A stretch of 64,000 nt of DNA from Blastocystis sp. Blastoise (lineage: Eukaryota > Protista > Bigyra: Opalinata), in assembly GCA_039096225.1 (NCBI GenBank), contig JBBPEB010000007.1, forward strand, positions 1 to 64,000, read 5' to 3'. Below are positions 1 to 58,155 of the stretch, in pieces (position 1 is the first letter of the stretch; each line of letters starts with the position of its first letter). Made by a program: the position numbers and the translations under genes. The notes below the pieces were generated by a model. That model ran no database searches. It saw only the letters and a list, made by a program, of their open reading frames with translations, and was not told where the DNA came from.

Positions 1-243
1 ATATAATATATATTTTATTTATTATGTATTTTGTTCTCTTGGTGTATTAATAGCTTTGTTGCTTTCGTATATATATATATATATATTTATACATAATCTT
101 TTTTTATTCTAATATTTCCCTTTTTTTTTTCTTTCACATTGGTATTCCTTTCTTGTAACTTTTATTGTGTTTTTCTATAATTTTATATATATATATATAT
201 TATTTTCTATTCATATATACTTATAATTACTTTTGTTTATCGT

Positions 244-306
244 ATTTAAGCTCCATAATGGATGGATATATATATATATATACAGGTTCAAATCCTGGCT
301 TAAATA
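244..306 (+). ncRNA. tRNA-like element with (TA)n in place of anticodon arm (type A)
   Basis: Acceptor stem ATTTAAG/CTTAAAT, D-like stem CCAT/ATGG with AATGG loop, T-arm CAGG-TTCAAAT-CCTG (B box), followed by TTTT. Confidence 0.65.
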
Positions 307-414
307 TTTTATTTTATTATATTCTTTTTATAATTAATTTTTATATTATAATTATATTATATATATATATATAGAAGATGAATTCAATATATTAAAATAT
401 ATTATTATTTTAAT

Positions 415-484
415 ATTTAATTTCTATAAATGGATAGAATATATAAATATTATATATATATCAGGTTCGATTCCTGACTTAAAT
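415..484 (+). ncRNA. tRNA-like element with TA-rich anticodon region (type B)
   Basis: ATTTAA/TTAAAT stem (one mismatch), CTAT/ATAG D-like stem, TCAGG-TTCGATT-CCTGA T-arm with canonical B box. Confidence 0.6.
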
Positions 485-2174
485 TATTCTATTCTTTTAA
501 TTTATAATTATTATTCTATATATATAGAATTCAAATGTTTATCTAATCAATTATGTAATATATATAGTTATCTTCAATTATTTAATCATCAAGAAATCTC
601 TTTGTATTTACAAAAATTAAAAGATTTTCAAATAGTAATATAGTCTTCTAATTAATATTTCTTTCTTTTCTATCTTTATTTTCAATTCTCATGACAAATA
701 TCATCTTAATATGTTTATATCAACACTTCAGCACCAGTAATTAAAACATTTTTATATAAAATATGTTAATTTATTATCTTTTTTCAATTATAAATATTCA
801 TTATAACATATTAAACTTATATAAGCATACTACATAACTATTTTGATACACAATTCATCCATTCTTAAAAAATATTTTAGTCTATTTTTCAACTTTTAGT
901 CATACTAGTGTATACTATAGACTATTATTCAATGAATAGTATCAATTTTAATTCAAAAGAATAATATATGTTATTTAAAAATAATAAAATAAGAATAAAA
1001 AGAAAAATTACAATAAGAACTTTATCTTTCTTTTCAAACTTCTTCTTTTTATTTATTTATTATTTAGATACTCCTAATATTCATTATTTATTCATTTTTA
1101 TACTCATTATCATCTCTAGTCATCATATATATTTTTTATTTTATACTTTACTAAAACATTATCTTCTCATTCTTATTAATTATTTTCTTAAAGTTATTAT
1201 TATGTTTAATTCTTATTAATAATCACTTTATAAATTCATTTAACATGTTTTTATAAAGTATTTTAAACAAATCTTGTCAAAGACTCTCCTTCAACTATCT
1301 TCAAACTGTTCATGACTCAACTTTTTAATGATTTTAGTACTCTATTATTAATAGACTGTGACACTTTTCTTTAAAATATTCTTTTATACACACAATTCTT
1401 AACATTATTAAACTATTTTGTTTTTAAAACAAGTTATTATCATACACACATGCTTATTAGTCTATAATAACTTCATAAAAGTTATTTTTGTTTATTTAAG
1501 TCAACATGAGTGAATTCATAGTTTTTTACAAAATGTCTTTAAACTAAACTTTTATTTATTTAAATAGTATCTATATGTTAATTTACATTAATTGTATTTA
1601 TATTATATTATAAAAACTATTTTATGATATAAAAAATTAAATTTTAAAATAAAAAATAAAAATGATATACAATCAATTTTTCTTTTTTTATTATGTTTTT
1701 TTTATTAATATTATATATTATATATATATCCAATACACACACAACCTATATAATAATAATATATAATAAAATAAATAATATATACCTTATTAAAGGGTTA
1801 AACACCCTCTAGTTGAAAGAATAGTTTAGAAATTTTTGAATTTTTGTTATATTTTTTTTTACCTATTTTAATCATTTCTATACCTAATACTTACAAAGAA
1901 GACTCAATACTTCATTAAACACACTCAACTCATCCTATATATACTTTCTATATAAAAATAACTATATAATATAAAATATTTATACATAATCACCACAATT
2001 GTCTAATATAATATATACCTTAAAAAGTATTCCAATGATACTAAGACAACATAAATGATCCAAAATCATCGTAGAACATAGTTTATCATCATAAGTACCA
2101 AAACCAACACTACAAAGACAATGGGAAAAAGTGATGTTATGAATTTTCATTCATAAACATCACTTTCAACTTAA

Positions 2175-2234
2175 TTAAAATCTTCCCATTCTTACCTTAA
2201 ACCTTTTCAAACGTAGTAATTCAAACAGATCCAT
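2175..2234 (-). CDS. Candidate micropeptide MDLFELLRLKRFKVRMGRF (19 aa)
   Basis: Conserved with copy 2; only synonymous or conservative substitutions. Confidence 0.3.
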   Translation of the reverse strand: MDLFELLRLKRFKVRMGRF

Positions 2235-2429
2235 GAATAGCACCACATTTCAACAAACCACAAGTATCCTAACACTATAAATAGCTACACATTCAAACTC
2301 AAGACAAGAATGGCGTCTATTTATTATTTAATATAAATAATATTTCATTATAAAAATAAAAATAAATATATAGAATTCATTAAATAAATAAAAATAAAAG
2401 AATTACCATTATAATTTAAAAAAAAAACA

Positions 2430-3080
2430 AAAAAAGTAAAGTAAAATATTAAAGCCTCTCAAAAAGGTCAACCACTTTTTTACCCTAATAACATTTTGGT
2501 TGACTTTTTTATTTTAATTCATTCTATTGGCTTATTTCATCCTACAATCGTAGAATCGTAGACTCTACGATTCTAGGATTGTAGACAGCCAATCAAATTC
2601 ATTATCCTACAATCCTACAATCGTAGAATCGTAGACTCTACGATTGTAGACTACCAATCAAATTCATTATCTTATATTCTACAATCGTAGAATCGTAGAC
2701 TCTACGATTCTATGATTGTAGAAATGAAAAACTCTATTTTTATTGGATAAATCTTTTTTTATCCAATTATTTTCTTCTTTTTTCAATTCTACAATACCCA
2801 ATTATTTTATTTTATTTTTTTAACCAATTAAATTAATTATTTTCACCCTAATAAAATTTTGAGAACACTTCTTTTAAAACATTACCACTTTATTCTATCA
2901 TTTTTTTACCCTAATACTATTTTGGTTCACTTTTTTACCCTAATACTATTTTATTTCACTTTTTTTTAAACTTATTCTATTGGTTTATTTAATCCTACAA
3001 TCATACAATCCTAGACTCTACGATTCTACGATTCTAGACTACCAATTAAATCAATAATATCTTTTTTTATCCAATTATAT
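2430..3080. promoter_or_regulatory. CCAAT-box / ACCCTAATA telo-box / 8-bp palindromic repeat array (copy 1)
   Basis: 10 CCAAT/ATTGG sites between 2526 and 3075, four ACCCTAATA motifs, palindromic CTACAATCGTAGAATCGTAGACTCTACGATT arrays. Confidence 0.55.
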
Positions 3081-3140
3081 TTATAATATAATATATTTTT
3101 ATAACATAAATTAACATATTCTCAATATATATTTTTTTTT

Positions 3141-3177
3141 CCCTAACCCTAACCTAACCCTAACCCTAACCTAACCT
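3141..3177 (+). repeat. Interstitial telomere-like repeat (CCCTAA/CCTAA)
   Basis: CCCTAACCCTAACCTAACCCTAACCCTAACCTAACC directly after T9. Confidence 0.85.
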
Positions 3178-3529
3178 TTCTTATTTTTTCTTATATAGGC
3201 TCTATAGTGCAGTTAGTACCTGGATATTCTTCTATTCATTCTTTAAAAGGTATATATATATATATATATATATAATTACTATTATTCAACTATATAATTA
3301 TTTCTATTTTATAGAATTTTTTTCTCTTCTTAGATGATACTATTTATTTATATCTCTCTTTAGTCATTATTATATGTTTTTGGATTGTTCTTGGTCGTAT
3401 GGGCTACATTTTATTCTATATATATTATTTTTTTATATATATTTGTTTGTTTATATAATTATATATATATATATTGTTTTATATAATATATACTTCTATT
3501 GAACTTTATTATTACCCTTTTTTGGTTGT

Positions 3530-3550
3530 ATTTAAGCTCCATAATGGATG

Positions 3551-3594
<44 letters not shown>

Positions 3595-3615
3595 GGTTCA
3601 ACTCCTGACTTAAAT
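3530..3615 (+). ncRNA. tRNA-like element with (TA)n anticodon region (type A)
   Basis: ATTTAAG/CTTAAAT, CTCCAT/ATGGAG, long (TA)n, TCAGG-TTCAACT-CCTGA. Confidence 0.65.
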
Positions 3616-3755
3616 CTTATATTTTATTATAATTCTATTATTATGTTTTATTTATAGTCTTTTTATAATTAATTTTTGTATTGTAATTCTATTATATATA
3701 TATATATATATAGAAGATGAATTCAATATATTAAATTAATTCAAAATGTATTATT

Positions 3756-3828
3756 ATTTAAGTTCTATAAATGGATAGAATATATATATATATATATATA
3801 TATTTCAGGTTCAATTCCTGACTTAAAT
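3756..3828 (+). ncRNA. tRNA-like element with (TA)n anticodon region (type B)
   Basis: ATTTAAG/CTTAAAT, TTCTAT/ATAGAA, (TA)n, TCAGG-TTCAATT-CCTGA. Confidence 0.65.
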
Positions 3829-5525
3829 TATTATTCTATATATAGATTTCAAGTATCTATCAGCTCAAAATAATCAACTATATTTTATTATTAATATATA
3901 TATAGACATACTCAGTTAGTTTATCATCAAAGGTCTCATTGTTTTTATAAAAGAAAAAAATTAAATAATATTCAAATAATAAATAGTCTTCTAATTAATA
4001 TTTCTTTCTTTTCTATCTTTATTTTCAATTCTCATGACAAATATCATCTTAATATGTTTATATCAACACTTCAGCACCAGTAATTAAAACATTATTATAT
4101 AAAATAAACTAATTTATTATCTTTTTTCAATTATAAATATTCATTATAACATATTAAACTACTGTAAACATACTACATAACTATTTTGATACACAATTCA
4201 TCCATTCTTAAAAAATATTTTAGTCTATTTTTCAACTTTTAGTCATACTAGTGTATACTATAGACTATTATTCAATGAATAGTATCAATTTTAATTCAAA
4301 AGAATAATATATGTTATTTAAAATTAATAAAATGAGAATAAAAAGAAAAATTACAATAAGAACTTTATCTCTCATTTCAAACTTCTTGTTTTTATTTATT
4401 TATTATTTAGATACTCTTAATATTCATTATTTATTCATTTTTATATCTATTAAGATCTCTAGTCATCATATATATTTTTTATTTTATACTTTACTAAAAC
4501 ATTATCTTCTCATTCTTATTAATTATTTTCTTAAAGTTATTATTATGTTAAATTATTATTAATAATCACTTTATAAACTCATTTAACATGCTTTTATAAA
4601 ATATTTAAAACAAATCTTGTCAAAGACTCTCCTTCAACTATCTTCAAACTGTCTATAATTCAACTTTTTAATGACTTTAGTACTCTATTATTAATATTCT
4701 GTGACACTTTTCTTCAAAATATTCTTTTATACACACAATTCTTAGCATTATTAAACTATTTTGTTTTTAAAACAAGTTTTTATTACACCTATATGTTTAT
4801 TAGTCTATAATAACTTCATAAAAGTCATTTTTGTTTATTCAAGTCAACATGAGTGAATTCATAGTTTTTTACAAAATGTCTTTAAACTAAACTTTTATTT
4901 ATTTAAATAGTATCTATATGTTAATTTACATTGATTGTATTTATATTATACTATAATTATCATTTAAACATATTAAAAAATTAATTTTTTAAAATAAAAA
5001 ATAAAAAACATATTCAATTATTTCTTCTTTTTTTATTATGATATTTTTACTTTAATTATACACAAAATACATATTAAGCACACACACAACCTATATAATA
5101 ATAATATATAATAAAATAAATAATATATACAATTATAATTCATCAAAGAGCCTCTAGTTGAAAACAAAGTAGAAACATTTTGTAATTTTTAAGTAGTTTT
5201 TGTTTTCTATTTTGAATCGTTTCAACGATAAATATTGCTTAAATAATTTATATTTCATATTATATACATTCATAACCACCTATATAAACTTTATAAATAA
5301 AAAAATATATATAATATAAAATATTTCTAGACAATTAAGTTAATTGTCTATTTTTTACATACCTTGAAAAATTATAAGTTGACACTAACAGCACCCATTC
5401 ATCAAGATATCATCACACAACACCACTAACAACGAAAACAGCCAAAAGGAAGACCTAAAAAACGACACAATATACTGATGTCTAAACTTATCGTTCAAAG
5501 ACATCAGTATCATCGATACAGCATC

Positions 5526-5636
5526 TTACCTATTATAACAGTATAAAATAATATAAAATATAATAATATACCTAATTGGAAATCTTCCCATTCTTACCTT
5601 AAACTTCTTAAAACGCAAAATTTCAAGCAGATCCAT
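5526..5636 (-). CDS. Candidate micropeptide MDLLEILRFKKFKVRMGRFPIR (22 aa; putative intron 5530-5571)
   Basis: Homolog of 2175-2234. A GTATAT...ATAATAG 42-nt intron-like segment lies just before the stop. Confidence 0.3.
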   Translation of the reverse strand: MDLLEILRFKKFKVRMGRFPIRYIIIFYIILYCYNR

Positions 5637-5824
5637 GAATAGCACCACATTCTCACCTTTTACAAGAATCCATACACTATATCAAACCAACAATCCAACA
5701 CACATACCAACAATGGCGTCTGTTTACTTTTTTATATACATAATACTAACTTATAAATATAAAAATAATTATATAAAAATCAAAAACTTTAATAAAAATA
5801 ATTCATAAACTTTAAAAAGAAATA

Positions 5825-6472
5825 AAAAAAGTAAAGTAAAATATTAAAGCCTCTCAAAAAGGTCAACCACTTTTTTACCCTAATAACATTTTGGTTGACT
5901 TTTTTATTTTAATTCATTCTATTGGCTTATTTCATCCTACAATTCTACAATTCTAGATTCTGGAATTCTAGAATTGTAAACTACCAATCATTTTCATTAT
6001 CCTACAATTCTACAATTCCAGAATCTAGAATTCTAGAATCCTACACTACCAATCAAATTCATTATCTTATATTTTATACTCTACAATTCTACAATCCTAG
6101 ATTCTAGAATTCTAGAATTCTAGACTACCAATTATATTTAATATATCTTTTATTATCCAATTATTTTATTTTTCTATAATTCTACAATACCCAATTAATT
6201 TATTCTATTCATTTTAACCAATTAAATTAATTATTTTCACCCTAATAAAATTTTTAAAACACTTCTTTTAAAATATTACCACTTTTTTCAACCAATTTTT
6301 AACCCTAATACTATTTTGGTTCACTTTTTTACCCTAATACAATTTTATTTCACTTTTTTTTTAATTCATTTTATTGGTTTATTTCATTCTACAATTCTAC
6401 AATCCTAGATTCTAGAATTCTAGAATTCTAGACTACCAATTAAATCAATTATATCTTTTATTATCCAATTAT
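5825..6472. promoter_or_regulatory. CCAAT-box / telo-box / palindromic repeat array (copy 2)
   Basis: 11 CCAAT/ATTGG sites, ACCCTAATA motifs, CTACAATT/CTAGAATT 8-bp units. Confidence 0.55.
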
Positions 6473-6534
6473 ATAACAAATATATAATATTATTATAACA
6501 TTTTATAACATACTCTCAGTATATATTTTTTTTT

Positions 6535-6564
6535 CCCTAACCCTAACCTAAACCCTAACCTAAC
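6535..6564 (+). repeat. Interstitial telomere-like repeat
   Basis: CCCTAACCCTAACCTAAACCCTAACCTAAC directly after T9. Confidence 0.85.
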
Positions 6565-7600
6565 TCTAGAAGTCATAAATAATCATAAATATACATTATA
6601 TGTACAGATTATCAATTTTCAAAAATAATCATGGGAATTTATCAAATAACACTTTATAAGTCATAAATAATCATAAATGTGTCATTATATATAAAATTCT
6701 CAACTTTCATGAACAGTCACATATTATGTCACAAAACACCTATAAGTCATATGTACATATAACCCTAACTGTTTGAGTCAAATATATCTTAGTTTTTAAA
6801 AGAGACATTAAGATATCTTACATAGCACTCTATACCTCATATATATTAATCAGTATTTTGTTATCCATGAAAATATCTTAATTTCAAAAATAATCACGGG
6901 AATATATTAAATTATACTCTAAAAGTCGTAAATAACCATAAATATATCATCTTATGTACAGATTATTAATTTTCAAAAATAATCATGGAAATTTATCAAA
7001 TAAGACTCTATAAGTCATAAATAATCATAAAATTAGCATGATCCATAAAATGCTTGACTCTCATAAAATACCACTTAAATATGTTAAAGAAAACCTATAT
7101 GACTTATAATATACATAAGTCTATGGTTTTGTATGAAAATATAATAATTTTCTAAATAATTAATGAAATATCCCATATAACACTCTATACATCATATATA
7201 TACATAACTCTATCATTTTTATTAATAGATCTTACTTTCAAAAATAATCACGATTATCTATCAAATTTTACTTTGGATAACATAAATAATCATAAATGTA
7301 TCATTATATTTAAAATCATCAACTTTCAAAAATAATCACGGGAATTTATTCAATTTTACTCTAGAACTCTTCAATAATTATAAATATATCATTTTATATA
7401 TATATATATAATCAAGTTTAGAACATAATCACGATTATTCATCAAATTACACTCAAAAAGTCATAAATTTCATAAATACTTCATTATATATAAAAATGAT
7501 TACTTATTAATTTTTTTGTTATGAATGACTTATCAAGTCTCCTATATACTCCTAGGTACTCATTATTATCTATATGACTTACATACACCTATACTAGAAC
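6565..7600. repeat. Degenerate ~88-bp satellite with ~354-bp (4-monomer) higher-order repeat
   Basis: AAGTCATAAATAATCATAAAT-type monomer starts at ~6570, 6658, 6744, 6832, 6924, 7012, 7100, 7188, 7277, 7365, 7458. Several monomers four apart are the most alike. Confidence 0.75.
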
Positions 7601-52717: not shown

Positions 52718-52791
52718 TGCTCACAACCGGGATCGAACCGGCGACCCCCGCGTTATTAGCACGGTGCTCTGACCGACTGAGCTATGCGAGC
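52718..52791 (-). tRNA. tRNA-Ile(AAT)
   Basis: GCTCGCATAGCTCAGTCGGTCAGAGCACCGTGCT-AAT-AACGCGG...GGTTCGATCCCGGTTGTGAGCA, full cloverleaf. Confidence 0.97.
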
Positions 52792-58082: not shown

Positions 58083-58155
58083 TGGTCAATCCGGGGGTCG
58101 AACCCGGGACCTTTCGCGTGTAAAGCGAACGTGATAACCACTACACTAACCGGCC
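58083..58155 (-). tRNA. tRNA-Val(TAC)
   Basis: GGCCGGTTAGTGTAGTGGTTATCACGTTCGCTT-TAC-ACGCGAA...GGTTCGACCCCCGGATTGACCA. Confidence 0.97.

Follow-up and report, generated by a model that had tools for sequence, protein, structure and literature searches.

The first 64 kb of contig JBBPEB010000007.1 of Blastocystis sp. Blastoise (positions 1 to 64,000, hereafter the window; assembly GCA_039096225.1, 33.34 Mb in 34 contigs with about 20% G+C) harbour four short elements near the contig start that are shaped like transfer RNA (tRNA) and carry alternating TA, (TA)n, where a tRNA has its anticodon arm. The contig is called C29 here, and other contigs and loci are given by handles of the same kind (C14, L025). 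Here, we report sequence analyses confirming that these four units are non-decoding, tRNA-shaped modules of a repeat-borne family with at least 250 members in the genome. The units are of two types, A and B, and were searched for with a covariance model, R1, built from 14 members of the family with at least seven different acceptor stems, A and B copies having been left out. In the window R1 matched exactly the four units, each over model positions 1–67 of 67 and with 48.7–53.4 bits, while the next-best match scored 13.6 bits and the two real tRNAs of the window were not among the seven matches at E up to 10. A pattern for the T arm, CAGGTTCRANTCCTG, likewise had four matches in the window (at 283, 462, 3593 and 3806) against 0.01 expected. 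The four units are:

244–305, + strand: cloverleaf A1; full-length R1 match with 48.7 bits, E 2.8e-11; acceptor 244–250 with 299–305, D hairpin 251–267, (TA)n arm at about 268–281, T arm 282–298
415–484, + strand: cloverleaf B1; full-length R1 match with 49.7 bits; acceptor 415–421 with 478–484, D hairpin 422–439 (TTCTAT/ATAGAA), arm 440–460 of interrupted palindromic TA, T arm 461–477
3530–3615, + strand: cloverleaf A2; full-length R1 match with 48.7 bits, labelled 'tRNA-???' by ARAGORN; (TA)n arm of 38 nt at 3554–3591, T arm 3592–3608, no stem mismatch
3756–3828, + strand: cloverleaf B2; full-length R1 match with 53.4 bits, E 1.2e-12; (TA)n arm of 24 nt at 3781–3804, T arm 3805–3821, no stem mismatch

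Anatomy of the units and of their family

Three of the four units share the acceptor stem ATTTAAG/CTTAAAT, and the fourth, B1, has ATTTAAT on its 5' strand and thereby a T7.C66 mismatch. The D helix adjoins acceptor position 7 directly, the linker nucleotides 8, 9 and 26 of a canonical tRNA not being there, and comprises 6 bp that read CTCCAT/ATGGAG in type A and TTCTAT/ATAGAA in type B, a difference of two compensatory pairs. The T arm uses the same set of 5-bp positions in all four units, with a loop and B box of the form GGTTCRANTCC; A1 and the solo copies described below pair at four of these positions, the mismatch in A1 being A49.G65. The D arm is separated from the T arm by (TA)n or near-(TA)n, which measures 14, 21, 38 and 24 nt in A1, B1, A2 and B2, respectively, and there is no 7-nt anticodon loop. 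The minimum-energy fold is the cloverleaf for A1 (z -2.04), A2 (z -5.47) and B2 (z -2.05). An earlier sequence-only reading of the window had described four tRNA-like units at these positions, with a 7-bp ATTTAAG/CTTAAAT acceptor mismatched once in the second copy, a T arm bearing the GGTTCRANTCC B box, and (TA)n of differing length in place of the anticodon and variable region, and on all these points our results agree with it. The change in the D stem that it gave as CCAT/ATGG versus CTAT/ATAG is real, but the helix in question is one of 6 bp in which two pairs are compensatory.

The same reading had taken the units for non-decoding tRNA mimics, and this is borne out by comparison with Rfam. 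In a scan of the window none of the four units reached the gathering score of the Rfam tRNA family (RF00005), and the only Rfam matches at gathering score were the two real tRNAs at 52718–52791 and 58083–58155, which are GC-rich and canonical and scored 58.6 and 63.5 bits. No Rfam family other than tRNA matched the window at gathering score, and relatives of the units had no Rfam tRNA match at E up to 1. Of the canonical traits, the 7-bp acceptor, the 5-bp T stem and a T loop of the GTTCRANYC type are kept; the 5-bp anticodon stem with its 7-nt loop is not, and is replaced by (TA)n of 12–52 nt. It is extremely improbable that the units are genuine tRNA genes that have an unusual intron or decode in an exotic way, that they are tRNA pseudogenes of recent origin, or that they were copied into the nucleus from organelle tRNAs. 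The label given to A2 by ARAGORN, the canonical T arm and the GG of the D loop would be in keeping with such an origin, and R1 gives 20–29 bits on real metagenome tRNAs, so the overall shape is indeed tRNA-like. Opposed to this are the Rfam scores, the units' lack of both a 7-nt anticodon loop and linker nucleotides, and the GC-rich, canonical build of the real nuclear tRNAs of the genome. A parent is also wanting: ten organelle and two nuclear tRNAs were compared with the units, and none is plausible or shows a specific likeness. The resemblance to tRNA-Arg proposed in the sequence-only reading finds no support among these 12 real tRNAs, nor did the one pattern tried reveal a GC-ended tRNA of the genome with an AATGG D loop and the T arm of the units. 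The two organelle contigs, C9 and C12 (nad5, nad9, nad11), have one and the same set of tRNAs, arranged in mirror order and scoring identically, which suggests an inverted duplication or a redundant organelle assembly.

Genome-wide, the T-arm pattern of the family has at least 248 matches accompanied by AT-rich acceptor and D stems, and all 150 of the 150 candidates scored with R1 reached 74.7–87.5 bits. A search of the genome by covariance model had been suggested along with the sequence-only reading, and a model made from other members of the family recovers the four units. Members measure about 61–100 nt and follow one plan, consisting of a 7-bp acceptor, a D hairpin without linkers, one long perfect hairpin and a canonical 5-bp T arm; the perfect hairpin, of 3–9 bp with a 4–7-nt loop, stands in place of the anticodon arm. 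In an alignment of 32 distinct sequences, which was fitted to R1 and so favours structure, 94% of the stem cells were paired, against 25–48% when the partners were slid by 1–3 columns. Both sides had changed in 13 of the 21 pairs, including 5 of the 7 acceptor pairs and all 6 arm pairs, the latter being trivially satisfied in rows with (TA)n; the acceptor covariation is the informative part of the result. The covarying acceptor and arm helices sit outside the A and B boxes, and for this reason the constraint acts on RNA. The earlier claim of covariation and selection on RNA shape is supported across the family, where covariation is strong, but mostly by virtue of its wider membership, since the clade to which the four units belong contributes two D-stem pairs and has four mismatch positions. 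Two cloverleaves of other subfamilies are found on C8 within a few kb of four tandem 5S ribosomal RNA genes (L060 7267–9721, C8:42266–44720; 85.9 bits each, with a period of about 780 nt).

Subtelomeric blocks and a transposon as carriers

The four units are one tandem A+B pair that occurs in each of two copies of a block of about 3.35 kb, the B unit following about 110–140 nt after the A unit in each copy. The block copies and the features that delimit or accompany them are:

1–3140, + strand: block copy 1 (A1 + B1), its left end cut by the contig start; the two copies are direct repeats spaced about 3343–3402 nt
3141–3176, + strand: interstitial telomere-type tract (CCCTAA/CCTAA) of 36 nt between the block copies, read from the sequence
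3177–6534, + strand: block copy 2 (A2 + B2); homology to loci L011 and L017 begins at 3176–3177
3199–3249 and 3315–3337, + strand: inferred last exons of a + strand gene, with the stop at 3335–3337, 192 nt upstream of A2
6535–6564, + strand: second telomere-type tract, degenerate, bordering block copy 2 on its inner side, read from the sequence

Since the pair was duplicated together with its block, the window provides only one comparison of A with B and not four independent cases. The cores of A and B are about 85–95% identical and their aligned flanks only about 33–65%; A and B are an old tandem duplicate, and the block carrying them was duplicated afterwards. Over 1.8 kb, block copy 1 shares 96% identity with blocks on C13, C14, C17, C25, C26 and C31, and the block is common to at least eight chromosome ends. 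A+B pairs were found on C13 (two), C14 (in three places), C17, C20, C25, C26 (two), C28, C29 (two) and C31, and all those near contig ends point away from the end. A 31-mer of the 3141–3176 tract is the unit of the terminal arrays at contig ends, and with this 31-nt probe the true telomere arrays were located on C17, C25, C26, C31 and C13, at a distance of 17–20 kb outward from the nearest pair. On C14 the left end is followed, 26 kb further in, by an interstitial telomere-repeat array of about 0.9 kb (C14:25817–26672), and an A+B pair is placed 2.8 kb distal to this array. A satellite with a period of about 88 bp occupies window positions 6594–7420, directly inside the second telomere-type tract.

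Block copy 2 starts 22 nt inside an intron of the inferred + strand gene, which is one of repeated exons: in L011 and L017 the sequence upstream of the homology at 3176–3177 continues into 72-nt exons of phase 1 that are flanked by GT..AG. The junction at 3141–3176 looks like a break that telomerase healed and to which another block was later added as a cap. Healing followed by recombination is favoured here because the block keeps its introns and copy 2 begins within one, and a telomere-targeted retroelement, considered as the source of the block-(CCCTAA)n layout, is disfavoured on the same grounds. The exons of the inferred gene encode Ser/Val/Asp-rich units of about 24 amino acids (GSSVVVDS...GLE) and are separated by introns of 60–75 nt; similar exons are present in L058, and the gene may represent a subtelomeric repeat-protein family. 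In yeast, blocks of the Y' type are tandem, uniformly oriented and subtelomeric, are split by short interstitial telomere tracts and occur at many chromosome ends. The carrier described here, as distinct from the units it carries, is like them in its tandem same-orientation layout with interstitial telomere tracts at many ends, but differs in having no helicase gene and in that its second copy begins in an intron of a repeated-exon gene.

A second carrier is a 7.2-kb element, present in about five copies with one type-A cloverleaf each, in which the solo type-A copies, whose arms contain some G, are found:

C8:131723–138885 and C25:766806–774050 (L046, L052, L054, L057): 7.2-kb element with terminal inverted repeats (TIRs) of about 96 bp and 9-bp target-site duplications

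The TIRs start with GGGTAATCG, and the target-site duplications read AAATTTTTG on C8 and GGAAAAAAC on C25. By its TIRs and 9-bp duplications the element is a non-autonomous DNA transposon of the Mutator-like (MULE) type. The genome contains 28 matches to the MULE transposase domain, four of which (on C14, C25 and two on C26) directly adjoin DNA that is 69–70% identical to the element interior. The 3' half of the element is a long satellite of the TATATTATA type. About 1.1 kb of the interior has 70% identity with the sequence that lies immediately upstream of the A1/B1 pairs, which indicates that the subtelomeric module and the transposon cargo share ancestry. Neither the block nor the element contained a convincing long open reading frame or a Pfam match in searches of the unspliced sequence.

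The placement of the pairs raises the question of a role at the level of DNA, in which the B box, alone or together with the A-box-like part, would recruit TFIIIC and the pairs would act as chromatin boundaries or roadblocks, separating the block on the telomere side from the genes further in, while little or no RNA was made. Such a role could be read from the invariant B box and from the orientation of the pairs, which always face away from the telomere at 17–20 kb from the true arrays at five contig ends. The TFIIIC-bound extra TFIIIC (ETC) sites and tRNA-gene insulators are similar to the units in their B-box consensus and subtelomeric positions, and ETC sites do act as boundaries (PMC3395662). 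They need no RNA fold, however, whereas the acceptor and arm helices of the units covary, and TFIIIC binding cannot explain the covariation that these helices show across the family. The same module is moreover carried inside dispersed transposons far from telomeres, and most pairs are situated deep inside the repeated block and not at its edge. We therefore regard a purely DNA-level element as an unlikely account of the units.

The (TA)n clade and a proposed RNA

Types A and B belong to a clade of about 33 copies that has the acceptor ATTTAAG/CTTAAAT and the (TA)n arm. Every cloverleaf with (TA)4 or more directly before its T arm has the CTTAAAT acceptor strand, so the microsatellite arm marks one lineage and not repeated origins. 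Arm length ranges from 12 to 52 nt among 15 distinct variants, and it differs between cores that are otherwise identical or nearly so. Outside the arm 95.6% of 270 stem cells are paired in the clade, which also contains the two compensatory D-stem pairs; a copy on C28 (L025), whose D helix joins a 5' strand of type B to a 3' strand of type A through two U.G wobbles, is intermediate between the types. Relatives with an ordinary hairpin include C7:41034 (L062), which has the D arm and T loop of A1 together with a 6-bp hairpin other than TA and a U.G at 49–65, and L035 and L042 (on C16 and C34), which have the ATTTAAG strand and a 7-bp hairpin. In the simplest history, an AU-rich hairpin would have given rise to (TA)n, which has continued to slip ever since. 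Because self-complementary (UA)n forms a hairpin at any length, the length of the arm would drift by slippage, and it is treated here as neutral. A hairpin may be the sole demand that the clade makes on its third arm, so that (UA)n of any length can serve.

The acceptor/T-arm minihelix and the elbow of D-loop GG and T-loop TTC are the features read by RNase P, RNase Z and the CCA-adding enzyme. The best explanation for the units, to which we assign a probability of about 0.55, is that a tRNA-shaped RNA is made and then trimmed by tRNA-processing enzymes. Each unit would be transcribed from an internal promoter of its own for RNA polymerase III (Pol III), consisting of the A-box-like segment and the B box, or within a longer transcript. 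The tRNA-processing enzymes would recognise the minihelix and the elbow between D loop and T loop, with RNase P cutting on the 5' side of the unit and RNase Z on its 3' side, and this cleavage would both release a small tRNA-like RNA and set the ends of the flanking RNA.

Several features are suggestive of processing or of Pol III transcription. The B box is invariant in the four window units, all subfamilies examined have a pyrimidine, which is U in most of them, immediately before position 1, and 14 of 27 distinct copies have a T4 run that begins no more than 15 nt downstream, compared with a background of 18%. Most A-type copies have a T4 run within 6 nt, although one solo copy has it only at +18, and for the A-type copies we lean slightly towards a Pol III promoter of their own. 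Upstream pyrimidine content is strongly raised in just one other subfamily, at 80%, and amounts to a mild 63–69% before A-type copies. Strings resembling TGTTTGTT beside the units were considered as a possible downstream gene element of Blastocystis and dropped, as this motif, like stop-less genes, is reported to be absent from the tortoise strains (PMC12129017).

A number of observations weigh against a processed RNA. The minimum-energy fold of B1 is without the acceptor helix (z -0.89), (UA)n helices are weak, and neither B2 nor the most abundant subfamily is followed by a T4 run. Mismatches recur at four positions in the clade, and the most widely copied versions are imperfect ones: the pair 7–66 is affected in B1 and 49–65 in A1 and the solo copies, the outer D pair is broken in A1-like and solo copies, and the L025 copy has a G-to-T change in its B box. 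For relatives outside this genome, two metagenome scans gave either nothing or clusters of genuine tRNAs at 20–29 bits with R1. Nor can the sameness of the block copies be credited to the units. The cores are invariant among nine type-1 block copies (0 of 95 columns variable), and purifying selection on the cores was considered on the strength of a comparison with all flanks (Fisher p = 1e-4), but this fails against the local background. Between window positions 200 and 600 only 3 columns vary among the window and eight paralogous blocks, against about 6–24 per 100 nt deeper in the block, and this valley takes in both cloverleaves, the spacer and about 100 nt downstream. As the whole 200–600 segment is equally invariant, the invariance does not reflect selection specific to the cores.

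These points lend weight to a partial decay of the copies, which is a serious rival and the main one for the clade. The (TA)n clade would in that case be an eroding remnant in which a microsatellite overran the arm, while the copies persist through duplication of blocks and transposons or through homogenisation and the family is perhaps functional elsewhere. Decay is favoured by the four recurrent mismatch positions together with the one B-box mutation, by the acceptor helix that B1 loses on folding, by an arm length unconstrained between 12 and 52 nt, and by the nine-copy invariance, which covers the spacer and some 100 nt downstream equally, as recent gene conversion would give. It is opposed by the cores of A and B, which are still about 85–95% identical where the flanks have diverged to about 33–65%, by D-stem differences between A and B that are compensatory and have a known U.G intermediate, by the 95.6% of clade stem cells that are paired, and by the A2 and B2 copies, which are perfect. 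Serious as it is, we consider decay somewhat improbable and prefer the transcribed and trimmed RNA. A more far-reaching proposal, which we put forward tentatively and hold to be rather unlikely, is that this stramenopile uses hundreds of mobile non-decoding cloverleaves for small RNAs or for transcript ends made by RNase P and RNase Z, of which the units described here would be the subtelomeric and transposon-borne branch.

Known counterparts and meaning

The closest parallels to the proposed RNA are mascRNA and menRNA, the tRNA-like 3' ends of the vertebrate long non-coding RNAs (lncRNAs) MALAT1 and NEAT1, which like the units are small non-decoding cloverleaves with a reduced or non-functional anticodon arm (PMC8457004). 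The minihelix and elbow recognised by RNase P and RNase Z are likewise kept in mascRNA. There is one mascRNA per lncRNA in a vertebrate host, in contrast to the hundreds of repeat-borne copies in a stramenopile protist, which have no sequence relation to it. Nor did a triple-helix element come to light upstream of the units, although no search was aimed at one. The units would resemble mascRNA-type mimics in their proposed working but are not members of that family, judging by the lack of homology, the different copy number and the mobile carriers.

Short interspersed nuclear elements (SINEs) derived from tRNA are also multicopy and tRNA-shaped, and they too retain an intact B box along with a segment resembling an A box. 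SINEs spread by retroposition, whereas the units owe their copy number to the TIR DNA transposon and the segmental duplications that carry them; they are without target-site duplications or a 3' tail of their own, and on either side the copies have flanking DNA in common over hundreds to thousands of bases. Having no borders of their own, the units are not SINEs. The TMERs (tRNA-miRNA-encoded RNAs) of murid herpesvirus 68 are viral tRNA-like units transcribed by Pol III and are not aminoacylated. They compare with the units as tRNA-like elements that could provide Pol III with an internal promoter and RNase Z with a cleavage site, but the T4 run within 6 nt of most A-type copies makes a downstream cistron unlikely, and nothing points to a viral origin.

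Full-text literature searches found no paper describing such elements, and the genome paper on tortoise Blastocystis strains never mentions tRNA, telomeres or subtelomeres (PMC12129017). New here are the (TA)n arm that is limited to one clade and drifts in length, the A+B pairs in subtelomeric blocks and the solo copies in a transposon. Non-decoding tRNA mimics that make use of tRNA-processing enzymes have been documented mainly for two vertebrate lncRNAs and some viruses. A covarying family of hundreds in the DNA transposons and subtelomeric blocks of a gut protist would, if true, mean that this trick is older or commoner than thought and can be spread by mobile DNA. The (TA)n clade is in effect a natural experiment on tRNA shape: it retains the acceptor, D and T helices but accepts any self-pairing repeat as its fourth arm.

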